Below, piece by piece: positions 18,990 through 63,073 of a stretch of DNA of 64,000 bases (position 1 is its first letter; each line of letters opens with the position of its first letter). The position numbers were made by a program, and so were the translations under genes. The notes under the pieces were generated by a model that did no database searches, was not told the DNA's origin, and saw only the letters and a program-made list of their open reading frames with translations. Origin of the DNA: Haliotis rubra (Eukaryota); contig NW_025766581.1 of the NCBI RefSeq assembly GCF_003918875.1, positions 1 to 64,000 of the forward strand. The letters run 5' to 3'.

Positions 18990-21127
18990 ATGGCAACCGC
19001 CGGGCCAGAGAAGAAAGTAAAGGATAATTTCCTGACGTGCTCCATCTGCTTGGAGATGTACACAGACCCATGTACACTGAAGTGTGATCACACATTCTGC
19101 AAGAAATGTGTCACCTCATACATCCAAACCAGACCAGATGCTGTACAGTCCAAGACCATCCCCTGTCCCTGCTGTCGACAAGGCACCAAGGTTCCCCACC
19201 CCAGGAGGCCGGTGAAGGAGTGGGCTGGGCAGATCAAACCCAGCATCATTATACAGGGGCTGATTGACACCTATAGATCCGAGGTGGCTGTGCCAGGTAA
19301 AGTGAAAATATCATATGCGTGTGTACGTGTGCGTGTGCGTGTGCGTGTGCCTGCGTGTGTGTGTATTTAAAACCAGTGGTAGACTTAACATTGACATATG
19401 TGTGTGTAAAAAAATACCCTGCTTCCTTTATTAGCATTTTTAAATTGCAATGAAAATAAGTACATATGTACTTGTGTTTACAGGGACCTCAAGCACCTGT
19501 TGTACGATCTGTCAGCAACTAGGGGAAACAACTCCAGGGGTCTTGTTGTGTCCTGAGTGTGAAGTGGTCCTCTGCGACAAATGTGTGAAGATACACCGGG
19601 TGACCCCTACTCTATTGAACCATGACCTATGTGACCTGTCGTCTAGGTCAAAGGTCAAACGGAGGATCAAGTGTACGGAACACAAGAGTAACCGTGTTGA
19701 GTTCCACTGTCAAGACTGTGGGAAGGCTGCCTGTCAGACATGTTGTATCATCTACCACAGAGCTTGTAAAACTGTCGTCACCATTGAGTCTATGAAGCCA
19801 GGGATGAAGGCAGCACTGATGGAGAAGAGACTTGGCATGGAGAAGATACTGAAAGTGAGGTCGAAGAAAGTAGACATACGAAACGAGAAACTCCAAAGTA
19901 ATTCTAGAATCACAGAGTCAGCTGTTCAAAATATTAGGTTGATCTGCCAGACAGCTATTAACAAGATTAAACAGAAAGAAACACAACTCTTGGATGAACT
20001 GAATAACATATCACAGACATACGCCGACCGAGCTGATGTGAATCTGGAAGAGATCGAGATGCAGATGTACAGACAACATTGTGAGTTCATTGACCAGGCC
20101 TTGGTATCGGACTCTGAGATGGACCTGTATGACGCGTATCAGGCCTGGGAGTCTGGAGCTGTAGAGATTGAGGATGTCAGGGATACAGAGGCAGCAGCCA
20201 CCCGGAGAATAGATGACATCATCTTTACACCAGACACTGACAACGTCCTGAAGGTCCTAGATAACCTGCAGTTGGGAGAGATTGACGTCACATACCGGGA
20301 TCAGGGTACATGTCAGCCATCTCCAGTGCTGGTTGACACGATAGATGGGAGGGTGTCGGGTGATGAGGAGGAGCCTTACCTACAAGACGTGACAGTTCTG
20401 GTTGTAGATGGTGTACAGACATGTGTTGTTACGGACTATAATAACAAGTGTGTGAAATCTTTCTTCACAAGAAATAATCATTCATGCCATAGTAAACTTC
20501 CCCTGGATAACTCTCCAGACGGGATAACACAGTTGAATGAGAAGCAGGTGATGGTTGCTGTCCCTTTATCCCGTCAGATTGTAAAGGTAGAAGTGGCCCC
20601 CTGACCTGGTGCTGCTCTCTACCACCAAAACACGTGCCGAATATTACAGTCTGGCTGTTCTGAATCCTTCCTGTCTAGCAGCAGGTACTTGGGAACGCAT
20701 GGATATCCTTGACATGGCTGGACACGTGTTGAGGTCTGTCATTACAGAAAAGAAAGCGTTACTATTTGCCTACCCTGACTACATCTTCGTCACCAACAAG
20801 GGCAACCTACTCGTGTCTGACTGGGGGAAGAAGTATGTGACATGTCTGACGTCAGAGGAGGGGGATGTTTTATGGAGATACAACCGTACCGGAGACAAGG
20901 CACTCGTCTACCCTTGTGGTATCACAGCTACCAGCACAGGAGACATCCTGTTTGTAGACAGAGACACTGACAAGGTGATACAGATGACAGAGTCGGGAGA
21001 GTTTGTCAGGGAGCTGCTCACGTTAGAAGATGGCGGTGAGACAGGCATGTGCGATATATTCTGTGATAAATACGGTTTCTTATTTCTATGCACAGACACG
21101 GAAGTGAAAGAGTACGTGTTTGTCTGA
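18990..21127 (+). CDS. TRIM-NHL E3 ligase copy C (RING-Bbox1-Bbox2-CC-NHL, TRIM56/TRIM2/3-like architecture without filamin); exons 18990-19296 and 19484-21127; one +1 frameshift in the C-run at 20597-20601
   Basis: RING CSICLEMYTDPCTLKCDHTFCKKC...CPCCR; B-box1 CTIC...CPEC...LCDKC...H...H; B-box2 CTEH...CQDC...CQTC...HRAC; coiled coil; NHL-type repeats (GNLLVSDW, GITATSTGDILFVD, GEFVRELL). The GT-AG phase-1 intron joins the exons in frame. Removing one C gives 649 aa. Confidence 0.9.
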
Positions 21128-24100
21128 CATAAAAATCAAAAGAATGAAAGTCAGTGCAGAACTGTGGTTTATGACATTCTGTGCATGGTGCTAGTCTGGA
21201 ATGGCTCGTGTCTTCACCAAAACGTATGGGCATCGCTTTGTCAGTGAATTGCAGACGTGCAATATTCAAATAGGTCGTTTCCAGCATGAAGTTAAAAATT
21301 CCACCAGGTGAAAGATCACCCGCTGTTGTGGAGATTCCTGGGATGACCTGAGCTACACAACGACTACTTGATCTTAACAGTGTGCTGAACCAGCTGAAGT
21401 TTGAAGAAATGCCTAAAGGAAATATTCCTCTCCGTTATCCCTATGATAGACTAAAGCTAAGATAGAGTCTGGATATATTATTTGTTTTTTGAAACACGAA
21501 GAACATTTTGTGTTGGATAGAACTGAGGAATAACGAACCCGGTGCTGGTTAGGTTTTTTGTTACTCGGAAGTGTACATGTTTCCGTGTATATGACCACAC
21601 CAGTGTATGTGTATTTAGAATGATCTCATCATCCGGTCAACAAAGCATGGGCCCAAACAAATTCCAAACGATATTTCTAGTATAGAGCGATTTTTCCTAA
21701 AACCATATATAATTCCTTTCAAAAAGTTTAGACTCACTAGTGTAATATACTTCCCATCAAAAGTTTAGACTGTTTTAAGTGAGTCTAAACTTTTAAAAGG
21801 AAGTATACAAATTGAAGTCTTGAGGTCAAGGGTATACTGTATCTCTGTTTTCACATATTATACACAGGAGACACTATGTTGAAATGTCAACCCAAACCAA
21901 ATTGTTTTATTGCTTGTTAGGAAGTAAAATGAATGTGCGCAGTTTTTATTTCTGTCCGGTAGATGACTCTGAAGATGAGAAATTCATGTGATAATATGGT
22001 TGGACAAGGAAATTTAGTGAGATTTCTAGTATTAAATTATATTCTTTCGTAGAGCAATGCTAACATTTGAAATACTTGACGTCACGTTTCTATTTTGTGC
22101 ACCCATTTTCACATTACTATACATCAGACCATTATCTGACACATGTATATTTCAGCTTTTGTTTCTGTTTTGCTTCGTTTCTCTTTGTAGCTGCATGACG
22201 ATGAATGAACGAGTTGTAAGTCAATGGAATGTGGTGTAATGCCGCTTTGAACAGTTGTACTATAGTGATACAGTTAGATGGGCATGATGACGAGAGACAC
22301 AAAACACTGTGAGTAGACTATACTAGAGAGGAGGACAAGGAAATTATAGATGTAATTGCTGGGCCGAGATCGCAAATCTGGGATACCAGTCTGAGATACC
22401 AGTCTGAGATACTGTCAGTCCAGATTGGACGTACATATATTTCAGCTTGCGACAGTTATTCTTTGACGGTGATACTTGTGGTGAAAAAAGTTGTAGGTAA
22501 TTAAATTGAAATCACATAAAGTGTCAGTTTGTTCAAAGTATGTTTCTTTCGGTGTTAGTGAAATGGGACATAGTCAAGCATATTTGTAAGGACCCATGGA
22601 ATTCCATTTTCATAAGATATGTGATTACAAACATAGGAAGGACCCAGATTCCCTACCAACCACAAAAATGATCATTCCTGAAAATTTTAAACAAAACACT
22701 TTCCACATTCGCGGAAAAATTATTTAAATTACACTTGAGTGTTTGCCAGTTCATTTGACCCGGCGTTAAAATGAGGCAACATTTTCTTGTCTTTCTTTCT
22801 CAATATTCATTCACATGTCTCTGGTTAATTTCACTTCGCTGATTCAAACAAGTTTCCGGATCATATCAGATAAGTGGCTGTGCCCTCTATATATTACCTG
22901 ATTTATCAAGGCAATACGTCGAACTTTTGTAGAAGCATTTTGTTTCTTGCGCATGACATAAACTGTCTAGTAAAAATTCTGATATATGAGCGAAAAAACG
23001 AGAGAAAATATCCATGATAGCCTAATAGGGTCTTGTTCACACGAAGGTGTTTGTGTTTTTTGTTTAACTGCACCAAAAGCAATATTAAAGCTGACAATCT
23101 AAGCTGAGTTCAAGTAGTGCATGATATTTATTCGTATTTCATGATAGTTATTGACTAAGGTTAGGTCGCATTTCAGCCTGATTAGCAATGTGGCCCTTGA
23201 CGTAGAGCCGGACAAAACGGTTACCTTCATGATCCAAATAGGGCGATGAATTTGCTTGAATTGTCATTATTCAAACACGTGATGCACGTGCATTACAACT
23301 TTAACTGTGTAAAAGGTATGTTTATATGGAAAAGGTATTACTATATGCTGATTTCTGTGAAACGTAGCAAGAGTTTCAGCTTCATCGTGCATGTTGCATT
23401 TCAACTTTATGCTTGACATTGTGTAGGAACATAACAGTTGCAAACAGGAAAGCTGCAACATCTAGTTTAGATTGCACACCTCGGGAGGTGATATCATGAA
23501 CTCAACTTTTATTTGAAGTACCAAATCATTTGCTAGCATCATCAAAAACTGTTCACTAAAGTTGGGGAATATTTCATCAACTTCTCCCAAAACAAATGCA
23601 AAGCAGTATAACTAAAACATACTGGAGAAATTTACAAACGTAATGTTTGACACTGAGTATGCTCATCGTGGATTGATTTATGTCGGACACAACACATATT
23701 ATCAACATGAAACATCCTGTAAGAAAAGGCTAATAAAAGAAATCATCCCCATACTGTACATAGAAAATATTGCACTTTTGCATGAATCTTGGAATGGCAG
23801 GGAAAACCATTCATCTATTAGCCTGATATGCGGGTGATCTTAATTGTCACAATGTCACGGGGATGTAATTATTTCTGTCCTGTTTGTTTGTTTCTTGTTT
23901 AACGCTCAACTCAGCGATATTCCAGCTATATGGCGGAATATTGTAACTAATCGAGTCTGGACCGGTTAGTGCAGTGATCAACATCATGAACCGCGAGAGC
24001 GAGAGACATTGATACATCGTGTATGTGCCGAATGCTGCTCCGCCTGCACCTCGCCAGCAACACCTGACCTCGGCCTGATAAACATATGTTTCTCAATGTG

Positions 24101-26363: not shown

Positions 26364-26545
26364 NNNNNNNNNNNNNNNNNNNNNNNNNNNNNNNNNNNNN
26401 NNNNNNNNNNNNNNNNNNNNNNNNNNNNNNNNNNNNNNNNNNNNNNNNNNNNNNNNNNNNNNNNNNNNNNNNNNNNNNNNNNNNNNNNNNNNNNNNNNNN
26501 NNNNNNNNNNNNNNNNNNNNNNNNNNNNNNNNNNNNNNNNNNNNN
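26364..26545. other. Assembly gap (N run)
   Basis: Run of n characters. Confidence 1.
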
Positions 26546-26728
26546 TTTAAAGTGTGTCTCTGTGTGTGAGTGTGTTAGTATACAGCTTCACATGCAGATG
26601 CGTGTATGTTCAGATCTTCCTGCGTGTATGTTCAGATCTTCCATTGCTGCTTATGGAATCTGTAGTGAGTAAAGCGTAGTCTATTTGTATTAAACTAAAC
26701 AGGCACAAACTGCATGTGTATCTTACAG

Positions 26729-29272
26729 ATGGCAACCGCCGGCCTAGAGAGGAAAGTAAAGGATAATTTCCTGACATGCTCCATCTGCTTGGAGATGTAC
26801 ACAGACCCGTGTACATTGAGCTGTGATCACACATTCTGCAGGAAATGTGCCACTTCATACATCCAAACCAGACCAGATGCTGTACAGTCCAAGACCATTC
26901 CCTGTCCCTGCTGTCGACAAGACACCAAGGTTCCCCACCCCAGCAGGCCGGTGGAGGAGTGGGCGGGGCAGATCAAAGCCAGCATTGTGATACAGGGGCT
27001 GATTGACACCTATAGGTCCGAGGAAGATGTGCAAGGTAGAGTGAAAATATGATATGCGTGAGTGTATGTATTTAAAACTAGTGGTAGATATAACATTGAC
27101 ATCTGTGTGTGATGAACATAAGTATGTTTGTACTTGTGTTTACAGAGACCTCGAGCACCTGTTCTACGATCTGTCAGCAACTAGGGGAAACAACTCCAGG
27201 GGTCTTGTGGTGTCCTGAGTGTGAAGTGGCCCTCTGTGACAAATGTGTGAAGATACACCGAGTGACACCCAATTAATTGAACCATGACCTGTGTGACCTG
27301 TCGTCTAGGTCAAAGGTCAAACGGAGGATTAAGTGTACGGAACACAAGAGTAACCGTGTTGAATTCCACTGTCAAGACTGTGGGAAGGCTGCCTGTCAGA
27401 CATGTTGTATCATCTACCACAGAGCTTGTAAAACTGTCGTCACCATTGGGTCTATGAAGCCAGGGATGAAGGCAGCACTGATGGAGAAGAGACTTGGCAT
27501 GGAGAAGAGAGTGAAAGTGAGGTCGAAGAAAGTAGACATAAGCAACGAGAAGCTCCAAAGTAATTCTAGAATCACAGAGTCAGCTGTTCAAATTATAAGG
27601 TTGATCTGCCAGTCAGCCATTTACAAGATTAAACAGAAAGAAACACATCTCTTGGAAGAACTGAATAACATATCACAGACATACGCCGACCAACCCCGTG
27701 CTGATGTGAAGCTGGAAGAGATCGAGATGCAGATGTACAGACAACATTGTGAGTTTATTGACCAGGCCTTGGTATCGGACTGTGAGATGGACCTGTATGA
27801 CGCGTATCAGGCCTTGGAGTCTGGAGCTGTAGAGATGGAGGATGTCAGGGATACAGAGGCAGCAGCCACCCGGAGCATAGATCACATCCGGTTTACACCT
27901 GACACTGTAAAAGTCCTGAAGGTCCTAGATAGTCTGCAGTTTGGGGACATCGACGTCACATACCAGAACAGATGTCTGTCAACTCCTGTGCTGGTTGCCA
28001 CGAGAGACGGGAGGGTGGCGGATGATGAGAAGCCTGATCTATATGATATGATAAAAAGTCCTGGTTGTAGATGGTGTACAAACATGTGTTGTTACGGACT
28101 ATAATAACATCTGTGTGAAATCGTTCTTCACAAGAAATAATCTTTTATGCCATAGTAAGCTTCCCCTGGATAACTCTCCAAACGGGATAACACAGTTAAA
28201 TGAGAGGCAGGTGATAGTTGCTGTCCTTTTATCCCGTCAGATTGTAACGGTAGAAGGCACCCCTGACGTCATCTGTATGACGCGTATCAGGTCTGGGAGT
28301 CTGGAGCTGTAGAGATTGAGGCTGTCAGAGGTACAGAGGCAGCAGCCACTCGGAGAATAGATCACATCGGGTTTACACCTGACACTGACAACGTCCTGAA
28401 GGTCCTAGATAACCTGCAGTTGGGAGAGATTGACGTCACATACCGGGATCAGGTTACATGTCAGCCATCTCCTGTTCTGGTTGACACGATAGATTCGAAT
28501 GTGGCGAGTGATGAAGAGGAGCCTAATCTATTTTATATGACAGTCCTGGTTGTAGATGGTATACAGACATGTGTTGTTACGGACTGTGATAACATGTGTG
28601 TGACATCTTTCTTCACAAGAAATAATCTTTCATGCCATAGTAAACTTCCCCTGGATAACTCTCTACGTGGGATAACACTGTTGAATGAGAAGCAGGTGAT
28701 GGTTGCTGTCCCTTTATCCCGTCAGATTGTAACGGTAGAAGTGACCCCTGACCTGGTGCTGCTCTCAACCATCACAACACGTACCAAATACTACAGTCTG
28801 GCTGTTCTGAATCCTTCATCTCTAGCAGCAGGTGCTTTGAACTGTGTTGATATCCCGGATATGGCTGGACACGTGTTGAGGTCAATCACTACATACAATG
28901 AAGACTCACTGTTTGCCCGCCCCTGGTACATGTGTGTCAACAACAAGGGCAATCTACTCGTGTCTGACTGTGGTAACAAGTCTGTGACATGTCTGACGTC
29001 AGAGGGGGGATGTTTTATGGAGATACAACCGTACCGGAGACAAGACACTCAGTTACCCTCGTGGTATCACAACTACCAGCACAGGAGACATCCTGTTTGT
29101 AGATATGATCACAGGCAAGGTGATACAGATGACAGAGTCGGGAGAGTTTGTCAGGGAACTGCTCACGTTAGAAGATGGCGATCGGACAGGCATGCGCGAT
29201 ATATTTTGTGATAAATACGGTTTCTTATTTCTATGCACAGACACGGAAGTGAAAGAGTACGTGTTTGTCTGA
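26729..29272 (+). pseudogene. TRIM-NHL copy D; exons 26729-27035 and 27146-29272; nonsense codon, frameshifts and ~480-bp internal duplication
   Basis: TCA>TAA at 27274-27276 in B-box1; frameshift near 28050-28058; jump back at ~28268-28273 repeats the CC/NHL junction; G6 frameshift at ~29004-29009; B-box1 first Cys replaced by Ser. Confidence 0.9.
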
Positions 29273-29936
29273 CATAAAAATCAAAAGAATGAAAGTCAGT
29301 GCAGAGCTGTGGTTTATGACATTCTGTGCATGGTGTTCGTCTGGAATGGCTTGTGTCTTCACCAAAACGTATGGGCATAGCTTTGTCAGTGAATTGCAGA
29401 CATGCAATATTCAAATAGGTCGTTTCCAGCATGAAGTGAAATAGTCCACCAGGTGAAAGATCACCAGCTGTTGAGGAGATTCCTGGGATGACCTAAGCTA
29501 CACAACGACTACTTGATCTTAACAGTGTGCTGAAACAGCTGAAGTATGAAGAAATGCCTAAAGGAAATATTCCTCTCCCTTATCCCTATGATAGACTAAA
29601 GCTAAGATAGAGTCTGGGTATATTATTTGTTTTCGAAAAACGAAGAACATTTTGTGTTGGATAGAATTGAGGAATAATGAACCCGGTGCTGGTTAGGTTT
29701 TTTGTTACTCGGAAGTGTACATGTTTCCGTGTATATGACCACACCAGTGTATGTGTATTTTATATACTTATATGTCAATTAAATAGACGAAATGATGACA
29801 GAATGATCTTTATTTTATACCACCTGTAGTAAACCAGCCCAGTAAGCATTCTAACATCTCTGCTCATGAAACCCTGGTAGCATGGACATATGTATGACAT
29901 TGGATCCAGCAGCACGAAAGAGGGGAGTAAGTTGTT

Positions 29937-35600: not shown

Positions 35601-35850
35601 GTGCAGATACAGTGGCCTGGACACCATGCACTCCAAGTGGCTTAGGTGTCAATGTATGCATGCACGCAAATGGGAGTACACATTCAACCTTGAGTTTAAA
35701 CTTGGTTGGAATGATTGCTCAGGAGGCAGACATACAACGATTCTGCTGGCAATATCTGCGCGTATGTTCAGATCTATCATTGCTGCTTGTACTGAATCTA
35801 ATTAATTTCTATTAAACTAAAAAGGCACAAACTGCATGTGTATCTTACAG

Positions 35851-38466
35851 ATGGCGACCGCCGGGCTAGAGAAGAAAGCAAAAGATAATTTCCTGACGTG
35901 CTCAGGGCGAATGAGGGCGAATCGGGGTTGTGACCCACGTGCACGCGTATGTGGTAGAAATGCTTGGAAATAATGCATCTCGTATGTAATTTTTGAACTA
36001 GAACAGGAACTCGTGAATTTTATAGATGGCGACCGCCGGGCTAGAGAACAAAGTAAAGAATAATTGGCTGACGTGCTCAATCTGCTTGGAGATGTACACA
36101 GACCCATGTACACTGAGGTGTGATCACACATTCTGCAGGAAATGTATCACCTCATACATCCAAATCAGACCTGACGCTGTACAGTCCAAGACCATCCCCT
36201 GTCCCTGCTGTTGACAAGATACCAAGGTTCCCCACCCCAACAGGCCGGTGGAGGAGTGGGCATCATTATAGAGGGGCTGATTGATTCCTATTGGTCCGAG
36301 GAAGATGTGCAAGGTAAATAGTCCTAGGCCAAATGTTAGAAAAGTCCCTATCTTTTAGGATCTCTCAGCAGCAGTAAAAGCGTTATCCAGTACTTGGTAT
36401 GACAACTCCCACCCTCCAGAGATCTTGTCAATGTGGAACTAGACACAGAATGTATCAGGTTGCTGAAAACAAACAAGGATTACCCCGCTGTTGAAACAGT
36501 GTCCACATGTTCATAGACCAACTTCATGAGTATTAACCGCATGGTTTAATGGACGGTGACAAGCAGTGGTGTTCAACATGATCAGGATATGCAGTATTGG
36601 TGATAAGGCCTGGTGTATCATATTACCTGATAATGATGTTATCTCTACATTTGGCCTAGGAGTAGTAAAGTGAAAATATGATATCCGTGTGTGTGTATGT
36701 ATTTAAAACTAGTCGTAGATATAACATTGACATTTGTGTTGTGTGAAAGAAAAACCTACTTCCTTTCGTAGCCTTTTCAAATTGCGATATAAATAGGTAC
36801 ATGTGCACTTGTGTTTACAGAGACCTCAAGCACCTGTTGCACGGACTGTCAGCAACTAGGGGAGACAACTCCAGTAGCCTTGTGGTGTCCTGAGTGTGAA
36901 GTGGTCCTCTGTGACAAATGTGTGAAGATACACCGGGTGACACCCAATTCATTGAACCATGACCTGTGTGACCTGTCGTCAAGGTCAAATGTCAAACGGA
37001 GGATCAAGTGTACGGAACACAAGAGTAACCGTGTTGAGTTCCACTGTCAAGACTGTGGGAAGGCTGCCTGTCAGACATGTTGTATCATCTACCACAGAGC
37101 TTGTAAGGCTGTCGTCACCATTGGGTCTATGAAGCCAGGGATGAAGGCAGCACTGATGGAGAAGAGACTTGGCATGGAGAAAAGACTGAAAGTGAGGTCG
37201 AAGAAAGTAGACATACGAAACGAGAAGCTCCAAAGTAATTCTAGAATCACAGAGTCAGCTGTTCAAAATATTAGGTTGATCTGCCAGACAGCTATTAACA
37301 AGATTAAACAGAAAGAAACACAACTCTTGGATGAACTGAATAACATATCACAGACATACGCCGACCAACTCCGAGCTGATGTGAATCTGGAAGAGATCGA
37401 GATGCAGATGTACAGACAACATTGTGAGTTCATTGACCAGGCCTTGGTGTCGGACTGTGAGATGGACCTGTATGACGCGTATCAGGTCTGGGAGTTTGGA
37501 GCTGTAGAGATGGAGGATGTCAGGGATACAGAGGCAGCAGACACCCGGAGAATAGATGACATCATCTTTACACCAGACACTGACAACGTCCTGAAGGTCT
37601 TAGATAACCTGCAGTTGGGGAAGATTGACGTCACATACCGGGATCAGGGACATGTCAGCCATCTCCAGTGCTGGTTGACACGATAGATGGGAGGGTGTCG
37701 GGTGATGAGGAGGAGCCTTACCTACAAGACGTGACAGTTCTGGTTGTAGATGGTGTACAGACATGTGTTGTTACGGACTATAATAACAAGTGTGTGAAAT
37801 CTTTCTTCACAAGAAATAATCATTCATGCCATAGTAAACTTCCCCTGGATAACTCTCCAAACGGGATAACACAGTTGAATGAGAAGCAGGTGATGGTTGC
37901 TGTCCCTTTATCCCGTCAGATTGTAACGGTAGAAGTGACCCCTGACCTGGTGCTGCTCTCTACCACCAAAACACGTGCCGAATACTACAGTCTGGCTGTT
38001 CTGAATCCTTCCTGTCTAGCAGCAGGTACTTGGGAACGCATGGATATCCTGGACATGGCTGGACACGTGTTGAGGTCTGTCATTACAGAAAAGAAAGCGT
38101 TACTATTTGCCTACCCTGACTACATCTTCGTCACCAACAAGGGCAACCTACTCGTGTCTGACTGGGGGAAGAAGTATGTGACATGTCTGACGTCAGAGGG
38201 GGGATGTTTTATGGAGATACAACCGTACCGGAGACAAGGCACTCGTCTACCCTTGTGGTATCACAACTACCAGCACAGGAGACATCCTGTTTGTAGACAG
38301 AGACACTGACAAGGTGATACAGCTGACAGAGTCGGGAGAGTTTGTCAGGGAGCTGCTCACGTTAGAAGATGGCGGTGAGACAGGCATGTGCGATATATTC
38401 TGTGATAAATACGGTTTCTTATTTCTATGCACAGACACGGAAGTGAAAGAGTACGTGTTTGTCTGA
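35851..38466 (+). pseudogene. TRIM-NHL copy E; duplicated start (35851 and 36026), exon 1 36026-36313, exon 2 36821-38466
   Basis: CGA>TGA at 36212-36214 right after the RING; 19-nt deletion at ~36261; MITE in the intron donor; -1 at ~37650 (gggaca vs gggtaca); G6 +1 at ~38198-38203. The NHL region is nearly identical to copy C. Confidence 0.9.
36319..36664. mobile_element. 346-bp MITE inserted in the 5' splice site of copy E, 5-bp TSD GTAAA
   Basis: TIRs TAGTCCTAGGCCAAATGT / ACATTTGGCCTAGGAGTA (1 mismatch); GTAAA at 36314-36318 and 36665-36669; absent from the introns of C, D, F and G. Confidence 0.9.
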
Positions 38467-41400: not shown

Positions 41401-44400
41401 TCGGCGATATTCCAGTTATATGGCGGAATATTGTAACTAATCGAGTCTGGACCGGTTAGTCCAGTGATCAACATCATGAACCGAGAGAGCGAGAGACATT
41501 GATACATAGTGTACGTGCCGAATGCTACTCCGCCTGCACCTCGCCAGCAACAGCTGACTTCGGCCTGATGAACATATGTTTCTCAATGTGTCTGTGTCTC
41601 TCTTCTATTTGAATTAGTGTTCAGAGAGGTCAATGTTGGCTGATTATGGTTTGTTGTTTAACGCCGCACTCAGCTACGTTCCAGCTATATGTCGGCTATC
41701 TGTAAATAATCGAGCCTGGACCAGCCAGTGATCAGAATTATGAACATCGATCTTTGCAATGGGGATACTATGACATGAGTCAACCAAGTCAGCCAGCCTG
41801 TCCACCCGATCCCGTTAGTCGCCTCCTACGACAAGCCGACAAGCATGGGCTACTGAGGATCAATTCTAACCCGGACCTTCACGGGTGGGAGAAGTCAATG
41901 GGAGTTATAAGTAACAATTACACAGCACATGCATTTCAGTTCTTGGAAGGATTTAGAGATGAACATGAATACATGTGAACGGTCACTTACTGTTTAGATA
42001 CGTGTTCAAACTCAGTATACGTATGTGTAAAAGATTAAATCGCTTAGTTGGGAAACACAGGGAGTAGGTGTAGAACAGGGAAAGAATTGTAACCAGTATT
42101 GTTTATGTTGTTTCAAAGATTTTCTGAAAGTTGCTTTACTGGACATTTAATTTCTTTGCCACTTTAATCCATCAACGTTCTCTTTTGGTTATGTTGACAC
42201 ATTATCTGAATTTCTTGTAAGCATACCAACACCGGGTCGTGTTTTACAGACATTATAAACCTAACCCTATTTTTGTCCATTTTATTGAAGAGTTAACTTA
42301 AAACCTTGGAATAACCTCCAGTTGGAGATTTTACCAGTTGTAAAACCCGGTACGAGGTGTTACTTTTTGAACAAAGACCCCTAACCGGGTGTTACAAGTG
42401 GGAATACCTGTGACAAGATAAAATAACAAAATTCAAAAGAGGAAATCCTTTATTTAATGATTAACTGCTTAAAGCTTAGAGTAACATGGACAGTTTTGTG
42501 CCTGTCAGTAGATGGGATTTCGGGTTGTGGAACAAGCCTCTCCAACAGAACATCCTGGCTGTGGGTCGGTCTTTGTAACCGTGGTTACAGTGGTTTGCGG
42601 GTGGGCCTCGGCTGGTCTTGACTTTTCAGATGTCAGACACTGCAGCTTTCTGGTTGTCAGATAACCGTTTGTACACCCTTACTGCCTCACAGCGATGTCC
42701 TAGACAATAGAAATATTTGCTATTTACACACCTTCAACAAAGTGTTTTCAGTAAATTCTGTAGATTCCAAGATCATATCACATCCATATTTCCGCTTTAA
42801 CAAGAGATTAGAATCATTAAATATACTTTTTATTATGAGCATTGTGGGAGCATTATTGACGTCTATACCCTTCAAAACATATCACGTACCATAGACTACA
42901 AGTAACCAAAGATTTACAATAATGGACCCACAAATCAGCGAAAAGGCCGACATAGACTCTTACCTATACACAGAAACGTCCTTCACGTCAACAAAGGGTA
43001 ATACGCGCCCAGCCGAGAGAACACTTACGGAAAAGGTCGAGTTCAAGCGAATACGACAAACCACACGAACACACAGCCACCGGAAAGGTAGACTTAAGTC
43101 ATTGCTTGTGATTTTCTGCAAAGTAGATATTGTTAAACTGACAACTGATGCCATTTATTGTGTTTTGTCAACTGTTCATTATCTGATAGAAATGTACGAG
43201 TGTCAGTACGTCTTGAAATCAGTGATAATTGTGAGGGTAAGTTGTCTACTTCACAGGGGCTTGTAACGCTAAAAACTGCAATCAAGGTATATACTGTCAC
43301 TTAGTACTATAGTCTACTTTCGTTATCACTTTATACGATATCCTCGCGATGGTGTTGTAACACGTAGCACTGGAGCTAAGTGGGTAAATCCAATTATACA
43401 AAGGTTTTGTCATTGACTGATTCATGGACTTGAATAATAGTGTTCAGGTGTACTTTCAATGAATGTATCCGTTTAATCGTTCCTCCTACGTACTGTGCTT
43501 TTAGCGATACCTTACTACTGCTGGCTGCGGGGCTTTCCGATCATGTGCATTGTCAGTGTTTGAGGTTAAAGGTGAGTGAATAGACACCATGTATAGTGGT
43601 GGCGGTGCAGATATGTCGGTTGTGTTCTCCACGCCTGAAGTGCATGTATCTGGCAGGAACGTAGGTTTGGGTCGAGAGTGCCTGTTCACCTGGTCCCGAT
43701 ACTGTATAGCAGTAACATTATCCTGCATGACAATCTGCTGAGATCGACCATTGGCACGAATATGCTCCCAAGATTATTAAGTACATGCATGGTCAATATT
43801 ATGGTAACTATGATGACGTAAATACGATCTGACATTGACCTGTTCATTGGTTTGTGTAATAGTCAGTGTTCAGGTATAATTTCGGTGAGGGTGTCCATTC
43901 AATCGTTCCTCCTACTGTGTTTTGTGCGATACCTTACTTCTGGTGGCTAGGGGGCGTGTCTACCATGTGTAGATTCAGTGTTTGCCTTTGAGTAGGGTTG
44001 AGGTTAACGGTGAGCGATTAGATTAAATATATGTACATGATCCAATTCATGGCGGTGCAGATATGTCGGTTGTGTTTTCCACACCTGAAGTGCATGTATC
44101 TGGCAGGAATGAAGGTTTTGGCCGAACTTCCCTTATGATATACTGTTCATTAGAGACAGTCAGGGAAATCGTGTGTATACCACAATTGGGAACGGGAAGG
44201 CCAGTCCATGACGTCAACACCAGCGTTAGTAACAACAAGGTGGGGCTCGACGTTGTCATGGTAACATGTCAGTCCTGGATAATGTAGCTGCTTATATGGC
44301 AGAAGAACGTGGGTGAAGACCTGTCTCCGATACTGTGTGGCAGTAACATCCTGGACGACAAGCAGTTCAGATTGGCACCCATGTGCACGAATATGCTCCC

Positions 44401-44494: not shown

Positions 44495-44636
44495 NNNNNN
44501 NNNNNNNNNNNNNNNNNNNNNNNNNNNNNNNNNNNNNNNNNNNNNNNNNNNNNNNNNNNNNNNNNNNNNNNNNNNNNNNNNNNNNNNNNNNNNNNNNNNN
44601 NNNNNNNNNNNNNNNNNNNNNNNNNNNNNNNNNNNN
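44495..44636. other. Assembly gap (N run)
   Basis: Run of n characters, located where paralogs carry an (AGAT)n microsatellite. Confidence 1.
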
Positions 44637-44832
44637 AGAGAGAAAGACAGGTAGATAGACATCAGTTTATATTTAAAGTGTGTCTGTGTGTGTGAGTGTG
44701 TTTGTATACAGCTTCACATGCAGGTGCACGTATGTTCAGATCTTCCATTACTGCTTATTGAATCTGTAGTGAGTAAAGCGTAATTTATTTGTTTTAAACT
44801 AAACAGGTACAAACTGCATGTGTATCTTACAG

Positions 44833-46964
44833 ATGGCGACCGCCGGGCTAGAGAAGAAAGTAAAGGATAATTTCCTGACGTGCTCCATCTGCTTGGAGAT
44901 GTACACAGACCCGTGTACACTGAAGTGTGATCACACATTCTGCAGGAAATGTGTCACCTCATACATCCAAACCAGACCTGATGCTGTACAGTCCAAGACC
45001 ATCCCCTGTCCCTGCTGTCGACAAGACACCAAGGTCCCCCACCCCCGCAGGCCGGTGGAGGAGTGGGCTGGGCAGATCAAACCCAGCATCATTTTACAGG
45101 GGCTGATTGAAACCTATAGATCCGAGGTGGCTGTGCAAGGTAAAGTGAAAATATGATCCACGTGTGTGCGTGTGTGTATGTGTATGTATGTATTTAAAAC
45201 CAGTGGTAGACTTAACATTTACATCTGTGTGTGTTAAAAATACCCTGCTTTCTTGAGTGGCCTTTTCAAGTTGTGATGAAAATAAGAACGTGTGTACTTG
45301 TGTTTACAGAGACCTCGAGCACCTGTTGTATGATCTGTGAGCAACTAGGGGAGACAACACTAGGGGTCTTGTGGTGTCCTGAGTGTGAAGTGGCCCTCTG
45401 TGACAAATGTGTGAAGACACACCGGGTGACCCCTACTTTATTGAACCATGACCTATGTGACCTGTCGTCTAGGTCAAAGGTCAAACGGAGGATCATGTGT
45501 ACGGAACACAAGAGTAACCGTGTTGAGTTCCACTGTCAAGACTGTGGGAAGGCTGCCTGTCAGACATGTTGTATCATCTACCACAGAGCTTGTAAGACTG
45601 TCGTAACCATTGAGTCTATGAAGCCAGGGATGAAAGCAGCACTGATCGAGAAGAGACTTGGCATGGAGAAGAGACTGAAAGTGAGGTCGAAGAAAGTAGA
45701 CATAAAACACGAGTAGCTCCAAAGTAGTTCTAGAATCACAGAGTTAGCTGTTCAAAATATTAGGTTGATCTGCCAGACAGCGATTAACAAGATTAAACAG
45801 AAAGAATCACAACTGTTGGATGAACTGAATAACATATCACAGACATACGCCGACCAACTCCAAGCTGATGTGAAGCTGGAAGAGATCGATATGCAGATGT
45901 ACAGACAACATTGTGAGTTCATTGACCAGGCCTTGATATCGAACTGTGAGATGGACCTGTATGACGCGTATCAGGTCTGGGAATCTGGAGCTGTAGAAAT
46001 GGTGGGTGTCAGGGATACAGAGGCATCAGACACCCGGAGAATAGATGACATCAGGTTTATACCTAACACTTTCAGGGTCCAGGAGACCCTAGAAAAACTG
46101 CCGTTTGGGAAAATTGACGTCACATACCAGGGCACATGTCTACTGTCTCCAGTGCTGGGTGACACGATAGATGTGAGGGTGGAGAGTGATGAGATGAGCC
46201 CTGACTTAAGGTGCATAACAGTCCTGACTGTAGGTGATATACAGACACGTGTTGTCACTGACTTTTCTAACAACTGCCTGAAATCTCTGTACACTAGAGA
46301 CAATCATCCATGCCACAGTAAGCTTCCCCTGGATAACCCACCATCTGGGATAACACAGTTGAAGCAGAAGCAGGTAATGGTTGCTGTACCTTCGTCCCGC
46401 CAGATTGTAACAGTAGAAGTGACCCCCGACCTGGTGCTGCTCTCAACCATCCTAACTCGCAATAGTTACGACAGTCTGGCTGTTCTGAACCTTTCATCTC
46501 TGGCAGCAAGTGGCGAGGATTGTGATGGTTACGGCATTGTTGATATCCTTGACATGTCTGGACACCTGTTGAGGTCAATCAGTAAATACAATGGCGTCTC
46601 ACTGTTTGCCTACCCCTGGTACATGTGTGTCAACAACAAAGGCAACATACTCGTGTCTGACTGGGAACGTGAGTCTGTGACATGTCTGACGCAAGAGGGA
46701 GATGTTGTGTGGATACACGCCCCTACCGGTGACAGCGCCATTGGTTGCGCCTCTGGTATCACAACTACCAGCACAGGAGACATCCTGCTTGTAGACAGCC
46801 GCACTGACAAGGTGATACAGCTGGCAGAGTCGGGGGAGTTTGTCAGGGAGCTGCTCACGTTAGAAGATAGCGATGAGACAGGCATGTGCGATATATTCTG
46901 TGATAAATACGGTTTCTTATTTCTATGCACAGACACGGCAGTGAAAGAGTACGTGTTTGTCTGA
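44833..46964 (+). CDS. TRIM-NHL E3 ligase copy F; exons 44833-45139 and 45310-46964; 653 codons with a single in-frame TAG at 45714-45716
   Basis: All domains are present and ORFs 45231-45716 and 45765-46964 share one frame. AAG(K)>TAG relative to copies D and E; no frameshifts seen. Confidence 0.88.
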
Positions 46965-47217
46965 CATAAAACAAAAGAATGAAAGTTAGTGCAGAGCTGT
47001 GGTTTAAGCGTTTGTCACTTCACTGCTCGTGATCTACTGTACGTGGGGTTAGTCTGGAAATGTTTGTGTATTCACCAAAACGTATGAGCATCGCTTTGTC
47101 AGTGAATTGCAGACATGCAGTATTCAAACAGGTCATTTCCAGGATGAAGGGAAATAGTCCACATGATCACCAGGTGAAACACACCAGCTGTTGTGGAGAT
47201 TCCTTGGATGACCTGAG

Positions 47218-50912: not shown

Positions 50913-51703
50913 ATGTCCGACTCATTAATGTGTCGAACCACTGTTGCCCTAAAGAATGACTTTCGAGAGACTGGCTACGTATTTGATATAATTATCCTTG
51001 ATGTTGAAGGCATCAAGACCATTGTTGTGTCCGACCTTCACAATACATCTGTGAAGTCCTTTTACGTTAGAAATGACAAATCTTGCCACAGTGAGTATGG
51101 CGTGGCCACACCTCATGATCTAACACACCTGGAACAAAACCAAGTGATGGTGTCGGCCCCCGATTCCTTCAGGATATCGATACTAGCTGTCACGCCTGAC
51201 CTCATTTGCCTCTCTGATATCAACACGTCGTTACATTGGCCTACGTATGTTAACCCCTTCCACGCTAGTAGGGTGTAAGTATGATACAGCAGCCATTGAT
51301 ATCCTGGACATGGAGGGGAAGGAACTCCAACTCGTTCTGTCTGGAAGTATTAAGGACAAAAGTATTTATAACAGGTTGTGTGTTTCAAGTACTCGTATCC
51401 AACTGGAATAGTAAGTCTCTCGTTTGCCTGACACCACAGGGAGATGCATTGTGGGAGCACTCCCCTGCTGAGAATGGGGAGTTCAGCAGACCCTTCCGTG
51501 TGAAGACTACCAGAACTTGGGAAATCCTTCTGGCAGACTATGAAACCAGCAGGGTGATCCAGCTGACCGAGTCTGGGCGGTTTGTCAAGGACATTCTTGT
51601 GCCTGAAGATGGACTGGCTTCTCCCACTGCATTGTATCTATACAATGAGAGACATTTATTTGTTGGTGTTGGTGGAGAAGTGAAGGAGTATCTTTTGCCC
51701 TAA
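50913..51703 (+). pseudogene. Divergent NHL/beta-propeller-only fragment of the same family, frameshifted
   Basis: DIIILDVEGIKTIVVSDLHNTSVKSFYVRNDKSCHS ... QVMVSAP ... VTPDL and VLVSNWNSKSLVCLTPQGDALW ... RVIQLTESGRFVKDIL ... VKEYLL align with the copy C-G propeller; disrupted at ~51230-51390. Confidence 0.82.
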
Positions 51704-53624: not shown

Positions 53625-55131
53625 ATGCCTCAAACTCGGTCCAGTCGCAAACGTGACCTCGGTAATCCAGCGATGGGGGTTGAAGTTAAGATGGGTCGAA
53701 TCAGAAGGAATCCCAAATTGCCAAGTGTTGGCAATTCAGAAACAAGTAAGCCGTCTCAACAATCCAACGACAGCGTCGCCATTACGACTCATCCCACGAC
53801 GTCAGACCTCAAGTGTGTCCTGGTGGACCAAGTGGAGTCGTTCTCCAAGGAGGTGGACAAACGGTCAGCGTACGTACAACATTAACAGAGAGTCGTTACG
53901 GAGGCCCGTGAACGCAAGGAATCCAATCAAGCTCGCATTGTGGAAATTGTCAAGGATGCCGTGGATATGATTAAGCACGAGGAAACGAAGCTGATGACAG
54001 AGCTGGATGAAATGACGGAGAAGCAGCTTCAGCAGCTGAATGATGAATTGCTGAAGGAGGAAGCAGACCTGTACAGGTTCCAACAACAATCTGACTTTAT
54101 CAACAAAGCTATGCAGGATGGTAATGGGGCGAATTGTCAGACTTTTCTGGAAGACTTGACGGACATTGGGGATGGGGCGAGCCAGGGGGATGTTGTTCGT
54201 TCAATAAACACAATCACTTTCAATCATGAATCTGAGAAAGTTGGCAAAGCCGTTGAGAACCTGCGCCTGGCGGAGGTTGATTTCACGTACCACGATAACC
54301 CCTTATATGTACCGGTGTTAGTGAACACGATCACCTACACATCTTTGAATGAGAAAGCCCGGGCTATAGATGCAACAGATGTCACTGTTCTCGATGTCGA
54401 TGGGTCGCAGGTACTTGTCGTCACCGATGATAGAAACAACCAACTGATATCTTTCTACACAAGACACAATGGGCCTTGCTATAGTGTTCTTCCACTGGAC
54501 CATTATCACCCGTGGGATTACACGTCTCACAGAGAACAGGGTGATAATAGCTCTACCAAAGATTGCCCAGCTTGTAACAGTAAAAGTGGCCCCTGAACTG
54601 ACCCTCCTGTCAAAAATCACCTGTAAGCGATATTACAACATGGCTGTTCTCAGCCCTTCATCTTTGGTAGCGGGGGGAGGTCAGCACGCTACTGGCTACT
54701 GTGTCGACGTCATTGACATGGAAGGCAATATATTGAGATCAATAACCGGCTCCCTCATCTACCACTCGGCTTACCTCTTCCTCAACAACAGTGGCAACAT
54801 CGTTGTGTCCGACAAAAGTACAAATTCAGTGTTTTGCATGACCCCCGATGGTGACGTGGTGTGGAAACACGACCCCAGCAGGAGCACGCCGTCAATTGGG
54901 TACCCTTTAGGGATCGTCCAGACCAACACCGGGGACGTCCTTGTGTCAGGAGAGAACGGCGGCAACAAGGTGATGCTTCTCACAGGGACCGGGGAGTTTG
55001 TCAGAGACGTCCTCACGGCGGACAATGGTCTTCAGACACCATCTGGACTGTGTCTTGATAAACGTGGTCATTTATTCGTATGTGACGGAAATCATATAAA
55101 AGAGTTTTCCTTCGCTGTACAGAAGCAGTGA
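53625..55131 (+). pseudogene. Divergent coiled-coil + NHL gene lacking RING/B-boxes in this exon; in-frame TAA at 53883-53885 and +1 frameshift at ~54506
   Basis: Acceptor ttttgtag ends at 53610 and ATG is at 53625. ORFs 53589 and 53940 share a frame. The coiled coil (IKHEETKLMTELDEM..LQ..EE..LYRFQQQSDFINKAM) and propeller (TVLDVDG..VVTD..NN..SFYTR..C.S.LPLD; GNIVVSD; GEFVRDVL; IKEFSF) are homologous to copies C-G. Confidence 0.85.
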
Positions 55132-55419
55132 TACCTACCTCGTCATGTGCGGGTCTTCGGTGTGACGAGCGATTGATTAACCCCTAGCCTACCCCACCGC
55201 CCCTCGTAAGTTATTGACATCAAGTGATGTAATGAATCTGATCAATCTCTCCCTCTCTCTCTCTCTCTCTCTACTTATATTGTAGACGTCCCGAAACACT
55301 TGTCCAGTTTCTACTGATAAATGATTCAAACTGTCGTTAATGGCAAATATTGCTTCGATGTCATGTTTAATGTGAACAAATAAATAAAGGTTTGTGTCAC
55401 CATCGAATGTGAGTATTGG

Positions 55420-60200: not shown

Positions 60201-60937
60201 TGCGACAACTTACTGTCTGTGGCTAGGGGGCGTGTCGAGCATGTGCATTGTGAGTGTTTGCCTTTGAAAGGGGTCGAGGTTATCCGTGAGTGAATAGATA
60301 ACATGTAATGCTCCAAGTCGTGGCGGTGCAGATATGTGTGTTGTGTTTGCCACGCCTGATCATCATGACAGGAATGTAGGTTTTGTCCGAACTTCCCTGT
60401 TAATATACTGTTCAATATAGACAGTCAGAGAAAACACTGTGTATACCTTAATAGGGAACGGGAAGGACAGTCCATGACATCATCACCAGTGTTAGTAATA
60501 ACATGGTGGGGCTCGACGTTGTCATAGTAACATGTCAGTCCAGGACCATGTAGCTGCATATATGGCCGAAGATGATGGGTGAAAACCTGGTCTCGATACT
60601 GTATGGTAGTAACATATTCCTGGACGACAATCAGCTGAGATTTCGACCATTGGCACGAATACGTTCCCAAAATTATTACGGATTTGCATGGTAAATAATA
60701 AGGTCAATAAGATGTCAGTGTTCCCAGTCTGACTGCTCAGATATAGATAGATAGATAGATGATAGACATGTAGATAGATATCTGTTTATATTTACTATGT
60801 GTCTGTGTGTGTGCGCGTGTTCGTGTACAGCTTCACATACAGATGCGCGTCTGTTCAGATTTTTCATTGCTGCTTGTACTGAATCTAAGTAATTTCTATT
60901 AAACTAAGAAGGCAGAAACTGCATGTGTATCTTGCAG

Positions 60938-63073
60938 ATGGCGACCGCCGGGCTAGAGAAGAAAGTAAAGGATAATTTCCTGACTTGCTCCATCTGCTTG
61001 GAGATGTACACAGACCCGTCTACACTGAGGTGTGATCACACATTCTGCAGGAAATGTGTCACCTCATACATCCAAACCAGACCTGATGCTGTACAGTCCA
61101 AGACCATCCCCTGTCCCTGCTGTCGACAAGACACCAAGGTCCCCCACCCCAGCAGGCCGGTGGAGGAGTGGGCGGGGCAGATCAAACCCAGCATCATTAT
61201 ACAGGGGCTGATTGACACCTATAGGTCCGAGGTGGCTGTGCAAGGTAAAGTGAAAATATGATATGCGTGTGTGCGTGTGCCTGCGTGTGTGTGTGTGTAT
61301 TTAAAACCAGTGGTAGACATAACATTGACATATGTGTGTGTAAACAAATACCCTGCTTCCATTCGTAGCCTTTTCAAATTGCGATGAAAACATGTACATA
61401 TGTACTTGTTTTACAGGGACCTCAAGCACCTGTTGTACGATCTGTCAGCAACTAGGGGAAACAACTCCAGGGGCCTTGTGGTGTGCTGAGTGTGAAGTGG
61501 CCCTCTGTGACAAATGTGTGAAGATACACCGAGTGACACCGAATTCATTGAACCATGACCTGTGTGATCTGTCGTCTAGGTCAAAGGTCAAACGGAGGAT
61601 CAAGTGTACGGAACACAAGAGTAACCGTGTTGAGTTCCACTGTCAAGACTGTGGGAAGGCTGCCTGTCAGACATGTTGTATCATATACCACAGAGCTTGT
61701 AAGACTGTCGTCACCATTGAGTCTATGAAGCCAGGGATGAAGGCAGCACTGATGGAGAAGAGACTTGGCATGGAGAAGAGACTGAAAGTGAGGTCAAAGA
61801 AAGTAGACATACGAAACGAGAAACTCGAAAGTAGTTCTAGAATCACAGAGTCAGCTGTTCAAAATATAAGGTTGATCTGCCAGACAGCGATTAACAAGAT
61901 TAAACAGAAGGAAACACAACTCTTGGATGAACTGAATACCATATCACAGACATACGCCGACCAACTCCAAGCTGATGTGAAGCTGGAAGAGATCGAGATG
62001 CAGATGTACAGACAACACTGTGTGTTCATTGACCATGCCTTGGTATCGGACTGTGAGATGGACCTGTATGACGCGTATCAGGCCTGGGAGTCTGGAGCTG
62101 TAGAGATGGAGGATGTCAGGGATACAGAGGCAGCAGACACCCGGAGAATAGCTGAGATCAGGTTTATACCTAACACTTTCAGGGTCCTGAAGACCCTAGA
62201 TAAACTGCAGTTTGGGAAAATTGGGGTCACATACCAGGGCACATGTCTACTGTCTCCAGTGCTGGTTGACACGATAGATGTGAGGGTGGAGAGTGATAAG
62301 ATGAGCCCTGTCTTAAGGTGCATAACAGTCCTGGCTGTAGATGATATACAGACATGTGTTGTCACTGACTGTTATAACAATTGCCTGAAATCTTTGTACA
62401 TTAGAGACAATCATCCATGTCACAGTAAACTTCCCCTGGATAACTCACCATTTGGGATGACACAATTGAAGCAGAAGCAGGTGATGGTTGCTGTCCCTGA
62501 ATCCCGCCAGATTGTAACGGTAGAGGTGACCCCCTGACCTGATGCTGCTCTCAACCATCCTCACTAACAATACTTACTACAGTCTGGCTGTTCTGAACTT
62601 TTCATCTCTGGCAGCAGGTGGCAAGGATTGTCATGGTTACGGTATTGTTGAAATCCTGGACATGTCTGGACACGTGTTGAGGACAATCACTGCACACAAT
62701 GATGTCTCACTGTTTACCTACCCCAGGCACATGTGTGTCAACAACAAGGGCAACATACTCGTGTCTGACTGGGGGAACAAGACTGTGACATGTCTGACGT
62801 CCGAGGGGGATGTTTTATGGAGATACAACCGTACCGGAGACAAGCCACTCAGCTACCCTCGTGGTATCACAACTACCACTACAGGAGACATCCTGGTTGT
62901 AGATAGGAACACAGACAAGGTGATACAGCTGACAGAGTCGGGGGGAGTTTGTCAGTGAACTGCTCACGTTAGAAGATGGCGATCAGACAGGCATGTGCGA
63001 TATATTTTGTGATAAATACGGTTTCTTATTTCTATGCACAGACACGGAAGTGAAAGAGTACGTGTTTGTCTGA
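60938..63073 (+). CDS. TRIM-NHL E3 ligase copy G; exons 60938-61244 and 61417-63073; two +1 homopolymer frameshifts (C5 at 62530-62534, G6 at 62940-62945)
   Basis: All domains are present and the intron is canonical. Correcting both runs gives 653 aa, the same length as copy F. Confidence 0.88.

Follow-up and report, generated by a model that had tools for sequence, protein, structure and literature searches.

A tandem TRIM-NHL gene cluster of abalone with diversifying selection on the top face of the NHL propeller

Introduction

In vertebrates, antiviral defence by TRIM arrays whose B30.2 recognition domains are positively selected is textbook knowledge. A 64-kb stretch of abalone DNA (the window) raises the question of whether an invertebrate TRIM family can diversify in a similar way with a different recognition domain, the NHL β-propeller. 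The window contains seven plus-strand copies (A–G) of one TRIM-NHL gene unit, spaced ~8–9 kb apart, and two divergent relics (H and I). A first-pass annotation, made from the DNA letters alone, had described a near-constant N-terminal part joined to a propeller with hypervariable patches, and proposed a candidate diversified recognition and ubiquitin-ligase (E3) system. We asked whether these patches lie on the predicted ligand-binding face, whether they are under positive selection, and whether the copies are intact. The results make it likely that the window belongs to a large tandem abalone TRIM-NHL cluster shaped by birth-and-death evolution, with a constrained scaffold, a diversifying top face, gene-conversion mosaicism and frequent pseudogenisation.

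Results

Domain architecture and predicted fold

Judged by domain matches and structural models, the genes are of the RING/B-box1/B-box2/coiled-coil/NHL type, that is, TRIM-NHL genes without filamin domain, of the TRIM32-like kind. The RING is covered by full-length Pfam matches to zf-C3HC4 (E 1e-9) and zf-RING_UBOX (E 4e-10), and its exon is intact in C, D, F and G; Pfam also reports an ANCHR-like B-box, zf-B_box and NHL. An AlphaFold2 (AF2) model of G codons 104–475, built with 64 homologues, shows two small zinc-finger folds, which correspond to two B-box folds and whose Cys/His columns are at least 90% conserved among 65 homologues. The predicted coiled coil is one unbroken 110-residue helix (codons ~203–312) followed by shorter helices, with a predicted local distance difference test score (pLDDT) of 87–97, and the same model also holds a low-confidence linker and the first two blades. 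No filamin domain was found between the coiled coil and the NHL domain, either in this model or by Pfam, the linker consisting of about 60 low-confidence residues.

The AF2 model of F codons 346–653 (123 homologues, pLDDT 92.2) has 24 strands arranged as a six-bladed propeller, closed by the N-terminal strand, which serves as strand D of blade 6. A phmmer search of the PDB retrieved the NHL domains of TRIM2 and TRIM3 at E 6e-9, and the best Foldseek matches were the NHL domains of TRIM3, TRIM2, Thin, Lin41/TRIM71 and Brat, at 14–18% identity, with target-normalised template modelling scores of 0.74–0.81 for NHL-only chains and 0.56–0.57 for the longer filamin-NHL Lin41 chains. A B30.2/PRY-SPRY recognition domain is not present, the C-terminal domain being NHL by Pfam, AF2 and Foldseek. 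The genes have the features of TRIM (RBCC) proteins, namely RING, B-boxes and, by prediction, coiled coil, together with the C-terminal six-bladed NHL domain of the TRIM-NHL group. Orthologues of TRIM2, TRIM3 or TRIM71 would have a filamin/Ig domain and be highly conserved across animals; here there is no filamin domain, the NHL identity is 14–18%, and the relatives below ~E 1e-30 are all from Haliotis among those looked up.

Variable patches on the top face

For analysis only, the copies were projected onto the reading frame of F, with frameshifting bases dropped and stop codons masked, and a protein alignment was made of C, E, F, G and the two halves of an internal duplication in D (D1 and D2). 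This alignment reproduces all of the peptide variants previously listed, such as PYLQDV/PDLYDM/PNLFYM/PDLRCI/PVLRCI, DYNN/DCDN/DFSN/DCYN and GTWE/GALN/GEDCDGYG/GKDCHGYG, the last with an indel of 5 codons that lies within the B3–C3 loop. The C-terminal segment of the propeller is near-invariant in it, as had been stated.

In NHL propellers the b–c and d–a loops form the top, ligand-binding surface, and the a–b and c–d loops the bottom (PMC4015489). The radical substitutions are located in the D–A and B–C loops, on the top face of the modelled propeller (pLDDT 92), which is where they had been predicted to be. The variable patches occupy the D6–A1, B1–C1, D1–A2, B2–C2, D2–A3, B3–C3, D3–A4, B4–C4, D4–A5 and B5–C5 loops or the first flanking strand residues, while the bottom loops are short and conserved. 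Averaged over the columns of an alignment of 92 Haliotis proteins, entropy amounts to 2.05 bits for top loops, 0.94 for bottom loops and 1.10 for strands, and the top class accounts for 27 of the 30 most variable positions.

Diversifying selection on the top-face loops

Ratios of nonsynonymous to synonymous substitution rates (ω) were estimated with our own GY94-F3x4 likelihood code, on topologies from IQ-TREE, with branch lengths taken from M0 and rescaled by one factor in the site models; selected sites were called by naive empirical Bayes (NEB), not Bayes empirical Bayes (BEB). The top, bottom and strand partitions were fixed before the results were seen. The first set comprised 15 sequences (window C, D2, E, F and G; H. 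rubra copies R1–R9; H. rufescens U1) over codons 383–653. The M0 ω of this set is 0.95, and M2a (−5136.2) is strongly preferred over M1a (−5216.8), with a likelihood-ratio test statistic (LRT) of 161 and 14.8% of sites at ω 4.0. Of the 24 selected sites with P>0.9, 19 belong to strict top loops, and none is more than two residues away from one. The top-loop partition has ω 1.40 (p 0.011 vs 1), rising to 1.48 (p 4e-4) when two flanking residues are included, compared with 0.44–0.50 for bottom loops and 0.51–0.75 for strands. In F, the top-face loops with selected sites are at codons 391–403, 421–424, 443–449, 463–466, 485–488, 504–510, 527–539, 554–557, 573–584, 599–602 and 620–629.

The second set was composed of 12 intact genes from four Haliotis species (H. 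rubra, H. rufescens, H. cracherodii and H. asinina), with no window sequence. The LRT is 157 for M1a/M2a and 167 for the M7/M8 comparison proposed in the first-pass annotation, ~13% of sites have ω 4.7–4.9, and the domain-wide M0 ω is ~0.95. The top class contains 21 of the 23 sites with P>0.9, and both sets share 16 codons (394, 401, 403, 421, 448, 488, 504, 505, 537, 539, 554, 581, 582, 584, 600 and 623). The window copies alone (n=5) also give a significant M1a/M2a test (LRT 30.8, p 2e-7), with all ten sites at P>0.8 in the predefined top class. Across these analyses the selected site class has ω 4–6 and the top partition of the first set 1.4–1.5 against 0.44–0.50 for the bottom, so that dN/dS exceeds 1 at the variable sites; the selected sites are not scattered over both faces and the core, but lie on the top face (24/24, 21/23 and 10/10).

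These findings demonstrate strong diversifying selection confined to the D–A and B–C top-face loops of blades 1–5, and purifying selection on the scaffold, namely the N-terminal E3/oligomerisation module, the propeller strands and the bottom loops. Could the patches instead reflect neutral pseudogene decay, or relaxed constraint on surface loops, without any adaptive diversification? Every copy in the window is disrupted, the domain-wide M0 ω is close to 1, and loops are usually the least constrained part of propellers. However, neutral decay predicts ω ~1 everywhere, and not bottom loops at 0.44–0.50, strands at 0.5–0.8 and 13–15% of sites at ω 4–5, nor the same sites selected in the 12 intact genes, and mere relaxation does not account for bottom loops that are not variable (0.94 vs 2.05 bits). 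The class-specific ω values and the intact-gene set therefore reject both neutral drift of pseudogenes and loop relaxation, which we consider very improbable as the source of the patches.

The other concern is that ω>1 could be produced by gene conversion or recombination, by misaligned loops or by the simplified likelihood code. The copies are clearly mosaic (see below), bootstrap support in the trees is low, the B3–C3 loop contains an indel, and branch lengths were fixed and sites called by NEB. Against this, the N-terminal control (B-box and coiled coil, codons 104–345), which recombines at least as much, gives an LRT of 0.3 with the same code (M0 ω 0.57, tree length 1.43 vs 3.7 for NHL), and no significant signal was found in the linker by the site-model test. 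When the NHL domain was divided in three segments, each with its own tree, all remained significant (LRT 50, 67 and 34). The tree-free Nei–Gojobori method (NG86) gives top-class ω values of 1.2–5.6 in the closest pairs, against 0.14–0.45 elsewhere in these pairs, and of 0.75–1.1 in the most diverged ones; over the pairs compared, values elsewhere are 0.14–0.67 for bottom loops, 0.17–0.77 for strands and 0.3–0.8 for the N-terminal part. Most selected sites are in ungapped columns, and the same 16 codons were picked by two disjoint data sets. The per-segment trees and the negative control in particular counter a recombination artefact, which is unlikely to be the origin of the signal, and we regard an artefact of any of these kinds as quite improbable.

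Several points nevertheless weigh against adaptive diversification of the top face. The codon-model code is simplified, with fixed relative branch lengths and NEB in place of BEB, and recombination, which is evident here, can inflate such tests. In the second set ω of the strict top-loop partition (1.23) does not exceed 1 significantly (p 0.13), while that of the extended partition (1.28) does (p 0.029), and only the site-class tests are decisive. Faces were assigned by the order of strands that DSSP gives for the model and by the definition in PMC4015489, not from measured coordinates. Finally, no intact copy lies in the window, so none need be expressed as protein.

Gene conversion and mosaic copies

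Synonymous divergence (dS) between copies is 0.03–0.15 in the RING, B-box, coiled coil and last blade, compared with 0.2–0.3 in the NHL core. The near-invariance reported for the RING, B-boxes, coiled coil and last segment is thus seen as sameness, but it is partly due to low synonymous divergence from gene conversion, and not to purifying selection alone. C and E differ at 13–16 positions per 150 nt over the first 450 coding nt (~10%), and at 0–6 per 150 nt thereafter. Blades 4–5 of G (62650–62800) resemble those of C and D2 (11–15 differences/150 nt) and not those of F (39/150), whereas its blades 1–3 are F-like. The 3′ flanks of C, D and E (21128–21527, 29273–29672 and 38467–38866) differ by 2–5%, compared with ~13% between the NHL core of D and those of C and E. 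These patterns show blade-scale mosaicism, by gene conversion or unequal crossover.

Together, the low dS and the mosaic breakpoints indicate that gene conversion homogenises the constant parts and shuffles blades, and that selection keeps or promotes the differences on the top face.

Two further observations concern the same copies. C and E are nearly identical from the B-box 2/coiled-coil region to past the stop codon (18990–21127 vs 36026–38466), and the coding part of the D propeller is more diverged than its own adjoining non-coding DNA.

A large expansion in Haliotis

The C-terminal 399 residues of F match at least 190 database proteins (E≤1e-5), with identity of at best 79%, and all of the 120 matches listed are from Haliotis (H. 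rubra, H. rufescens, H. cracherodii and H. asinina). Their automatic names are inconsistent, including TRIM2-, 3-, 36-, 56- and 71-like, wech-like and lin-41-like. An exhaustive search of 50%-identity representatives gave 2037 matches at E≤1e-3, of which 35 at E≤1e-30; among ten representatives looked up, the eight down to ~E 1e-32 are from Haliotis and the two at ~1e-23 to 1e-25 from Aplysia and Bradybaena. Flies have 3 canonical TRIM-NHL members, C. elegans has 4 and mammals have 5 (PMC4015489), and set against these 3–5 genes the at least 190 matches indicate a very large lineage-specific expansion.

H. rubra scaffold QXJH01000252.1 contains a collinear array of at least eight units in ~150 kb, with 88–93% nucleotide identity to the window, intergenic DNA included, and the intact H. 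rubra gene P0001 corresponds to F as its positional orthologue. On the sequence matches, this is a large tandem cluster seen mainly in abalone so far. Two features of TRIM5/finTRIM-type arrays are present: a tandem, lineage-specific expansion (nine units in 64 kb in the window) and positive selection in the loops of the C-terminal recognition domain together with a conserved RBCC part.

Some public gene models of the family join separate units. The H. rubra model P0005 (L004 10001–38245, QXJH01000252.1) spans 28 kb and connects the RING exon of R6, a frameshifted copy, to a main exon two units downstream, skipping one unit, which is probably an annotation artefact, and a 1176-residue model in L002 appears to merge adjacent units.

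Gene units and their lesions

The copies were located by self-BLAST of the 64-kb stretch, and the divergent fragments were added by tblastn with copy F. A full unit has three exons: a short 5′ exon, a RING exon and one large main exon. The RING exon begins directly past a ttacag acceptor (ATGs at 18990, 26729, 36026, 44833 and 60938), intron 2 is in phase 1 and measures 110–187 nt (507 nt in E), and the main exon ends at 21127, 29272, 38466, 46964 and 63073 in C, D, E, F and G, respectively. Position 18990 is thus the ATG of C and position 63073 falls in the stop codon of G. The coding sequence has 653 codons, and main-exon codon i of F begins at 45000+3i. The features are as follows, with self-BLAST unit spans in brackets.

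26–1136, + strand: copy A (unit 26–1300), coiled-coil end and NHL of an old pseudogene, its 5′ part cut by the window edge; tblastn pieces in frames 1, 3, 1, 2, 3 with 41–65% identity to F, ~71–73% nucleotide identity
9331–11595, + strand: copy B (unit 9331–11595), full-length, heavily decayed pseudogene with a 5′ exon homologue at 8410–8564; many indels in the DNA alignment, tblastn matches over three frames, 76% nucleotide identity to F
18990–21127, + strand: copy C (unit 18872–21242), RING exon 18990–19296, intron 2 of 187 nt, main exon 19484–21127
26364–26545, no strand: N gap in intron 1 of D, non-coding, between the 5′ exon and the RING exon
26729–29272, + strand: copy D (unit 26626–29387), RING exon 26729–27035, main exon 27146–29272
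35851–38466, + strand: copy E (unit 35757–38581), RING exon 36026–36313, main exon 36821–38466, duplicated 5′ stub 35851–35904
43192–43236, + strand: 5′ exon of F, an alternative start with GTAAGT donor, the same exon that is used by H. rubra model P0001
44495–44636, no strand: N gap in intron 1 of F, non-coding, between the 5′ exon and the RING exon
44833–46964, + strand: copy F (unit 44701–47100), RING exon 44833–45139, main exon 45310–46964, 653 codons
46149–46961, + strand: six-bladed NHL propeller of F, codons 383–653 (AF2 model, Foldseek)
50988–51694 (limits of the relic approximate), + strand: fragment H, NHL-only divergent relic with frameshift; tblastn, 38–44% identity to F in two frames
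53844–55113 (limits of the relic approximate), + strand: fragment I, divergent coiled-coil and NHL relic with frameshift (tblastn)
60938–63073, + strand: copy G (unit 60820–63211), RING exon 60938–61244, main exon 61417–63073

No RING or B-box was detected upstream of fragment I by Pfam and open reading frame (ORF) search.

None of the nine units is intact, each having at least one stop codon, frameshift, rearrangement or truncation, and the proposal of a working recognition/E3 system within this stretch does not hold for the DNA as assembled (0/9 units with an intact reading frame). C has a single lesion, a 1-bp insertion in a C-run that leads to TGA 20602–20604, with the ORFs 19450–20604 and 20609–21127 both open, and F has a single nonsense codon, TAG 45714–45716 (codon 238, in the coiled coil). 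G has lesions at two sites: the C-run affected in C has gained 1 bp here too (TGA 62535–62537), and so has a G-run near 62941–62946. In D, B-box 1 is interrupted by TAA 27274–27276, 4 bp are inserted near 28055 and 1 bp in a G-run near 29005, and there is a ~474-bp internal tandem duplication from the coiled-coil end to blade 2 (D1 27799–28272, D2 28273–28746). E combines TGA 36212–36214 and a 19-bp deletion in the RING exon with the loss of 1 bp near 37650 and the gain of 1 bp near 38200; in addition, the first 54 nt of its RING exon are duplicated ~175 bp upstream (35851–35904), and its intron 2 (36314–36820) reaches 507 nt through a ~340-nt insertion that no other copy has. Frameshifts are numerous in A and B, and H and I are truncated and frameshifted, so the number of lesions climbs with the divergence of the copy. 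The H. rubra array is similar, with pseudogenes R2, R3 and R7 beside intact R1, R4 and R8, and about half of it intact.

Some of these lesions, especially the single ones in C, F and G, might be errors of assembly or consensus calling, or null alleles carried by the individual sequenced, in an array that holds working genes in the species. The C and G lesions are 1-bp insertions in homopolymer runs, and CCCCCTGAC could blend the two paralogue states CCCCCGAC and CCCCTGAC. The scaffold ω of C, F and G against H. rubra copies is still 0.2–0.45, from which it follows that constraint acted until recently, and the positional orthologue of F in H. rubra is intact. On the other side, the nonsense codons of F, D and E are of the substitution type, D and E carry large rearrangements, the lesion count rises with divergence up to the heavily decayed A and B, as expected for real decay, and similar pseudogenes, along with the insertion in this C-run, recur in an independent assembly of H. 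rubra. We therefore consider this explanation unlikely. Real birth-and-death turnover fits the lesion pattern better than uniform assembly error, and because of the low scaffold ω the window copies look like recently lost or polymorphic-null members.

The C-run, at coding position ~1420, is itself unusual. The +1 insertion occurs in C (20597–20604), G (62530–62537) and H. rubra R6 (L004 11555–11580), which all converge on ...CCCCC-TGA-C... from two ancestral states, CCCCTGAC and CCCCCGAC; in C and R6 it is the only lesion and the +1 frame is open to the natural stop. The resulting CCC-CCC-TGA-C resembles the CCC/UCC-UGA sites of antizyme type, and could be read as a site of +1 ribosomal frameshifting. 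Copy B, however, has a −1 deletion in that run (10900–10915), G has a second frameshift, and E, the near-identical sister of C, is without the insertion, which makes programmed frameshifting extremely improbable. We prefer a slippage hotspot as the cause, a consensus blend of two paralogue states being also possible.

The duplicated parts D1 and D2 differ in their top-loop variants, so the duplication is either old or derived from unequal exchange between different paralogues. Both N runs (26364–26545 and 44495–44636) lie between the 5′ non-coding/alternative-start exon, which in D has a homologue at 25624–31, and the RING exon (ATG 26729 and 44833). This position places them in intron 1, outside the coding sequence, and no reading frame spans either gap. 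A single H. rubra gene is collinear with their flanks, which keep their order and strand in it; the flanks match H. rubra sequences (L001 ~11470–14400) ~2.9–3.4 kb apart, while the gaps are written as 142 and 182 N, which means that the written lengths are too short or that H. rubra carries additional intron sequence. Intron 2 of C (19318–19390), F (45161–45200) and G (61266–61300) holds an imperfect (GT/GC)n microsatellite, which varies in length by copy and is shortened in D.

Discussion

Selected loops in the recognition domain are a pattern that the abalone genes share with primate TRIM5 and TRIM22. They are also found in the teleost finTRIM (ftr) and bloodthirsty-like TRIMs, which, like the abalone genes, have a constant RING/B-box/coiled-coil part and tandem arrays with many pseudogenes (PMC2657112). 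The finTRIM, TRIM5 and TRIM22 proteins differ in that their recognition domain is B30.2/PRY-SPRY and not NHL, they are vertebrate-specific, and their antiviral activity has been demonstrated, whereas that of the abalone genes is putative.

The canonical TRIM-NHL proteins (TRIM2, TRIM3, TRIM32, TRIM71/LIN-41, Brat, Mei-P26, Thin and Wech) have in common with the abalone genes the overall architecture and the six-bladed NHL domain, whose top face binds ligands or RNA in the canonical members (PMC4015489). However, there are 3–5 conserved canonical members per genome (PMC4015489), whereas an abalone genome has dozens. The filamin domain of TRIM2/3/71 is absent from the abalone genes, which have only 14–18% identity to canonical NHL domains, and the canonical TRIM-NHL genes are under purifying selection while the abalone family is diversifying. 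A further parallel is offered by the F-box and MATH-BTB adaptor expansions of nematodes and plants, which Thomas reportedly described in 2006 as large and lineage-specific, the substrate-binding surface being positively selected and the ligase-docking part conserved. These adaptors are separate subunits of cullin ligases and not single-chain RING E3s, and their folds are unrelated to those of the abalone genes.

By analogy with other TRIM proteins, the RING of intact members would recruit an E2 and provide ubiquitin-ligase activity, the B-boxes and coiled coil would mediate dimerisation and assembly, and the variable NHL top face would select the target to be ubiquitinated. The evolutionary signature suggests targets that change fast, among which viral or other parasitic proteins or nucleic acids would be the most plausible.

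Diversification might instead serve endogenous targets or genomic conflict, such as mRNA regulation, control of transposons and retroelements, or gamete or self recognition. The canonical TRIM-NHL proteins regulate RNA through this same top face (PMC4015489), and the open-access literature searched gave no evidence of immune induction of abalone TRIM-NHLs. The top face of canonical, Brat-type RNA-binding members is, however, electropositive (PMC4015489), whereas the net charge of the abalone top loops, by crude residue counts, averages −2.2 and ranges from −15 to +7 (−10 in F). Such variable and on average slightly acidic loops argue against one uniform RNA ligand, within the limits of this crude measure. 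The combination of tandem expansion, selected recognition surface and pseudogene turnover is moreover a conflict-driven signature like that of finTRIM (PMC2657112), although it does not tell viruses from transposons. We find purely non-pathogen targets somewhat doubtful.

The comparison suggests an immune role, in which case the family would be an NHL-based convergent counterpart of TRIM5/finTRIM. More specifically, and tentatively, abalone may have a germline repertoire of dozens of TRIM-NHL E3s that act as putative intracellular restriction factors or sensors of viruses (e.g. haliotid herpesvirus) or of genomic parasites, their top face diversified by selection and gene conversion, with the window as a pseudogene-rich turnover edge of this repertoire.

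Public annotation already includes these genes under names that mislead, and it is broadly known that TRIM genes have expanded in molluscs. What is new is that the NHL face is under diversifying selection in a mollusc TRIM family, of which we found no description: full-text literature searches returned nothing on TRIM-NHL expansion, selection or function in molluscs or abalone, nor on haliotid herpesvirus together with TRIM. A paper on oyster names TRIM genes among the loci associated with OsHV-1 (PMC9437489). For annotation, the results are a warning that the names TRIM2-like, TRIM71-like and lin-41-like do not reflect orthology, and that many members of such arrays are pseudogenes or are merged across copies in gene models.

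The NHL domain, which in model animals is a conserved RNA- or protein-binding module, is here the target of strong diversifying selection on its top face. The family thereby provides a concrete candidate set for invertebrate intracellular recognition, with named residues and a naturally occurring set of variants for comparison, in a mollusc that matters to both aquaculture and conservation and is subject to lethal outbreaks of herpesvirus.

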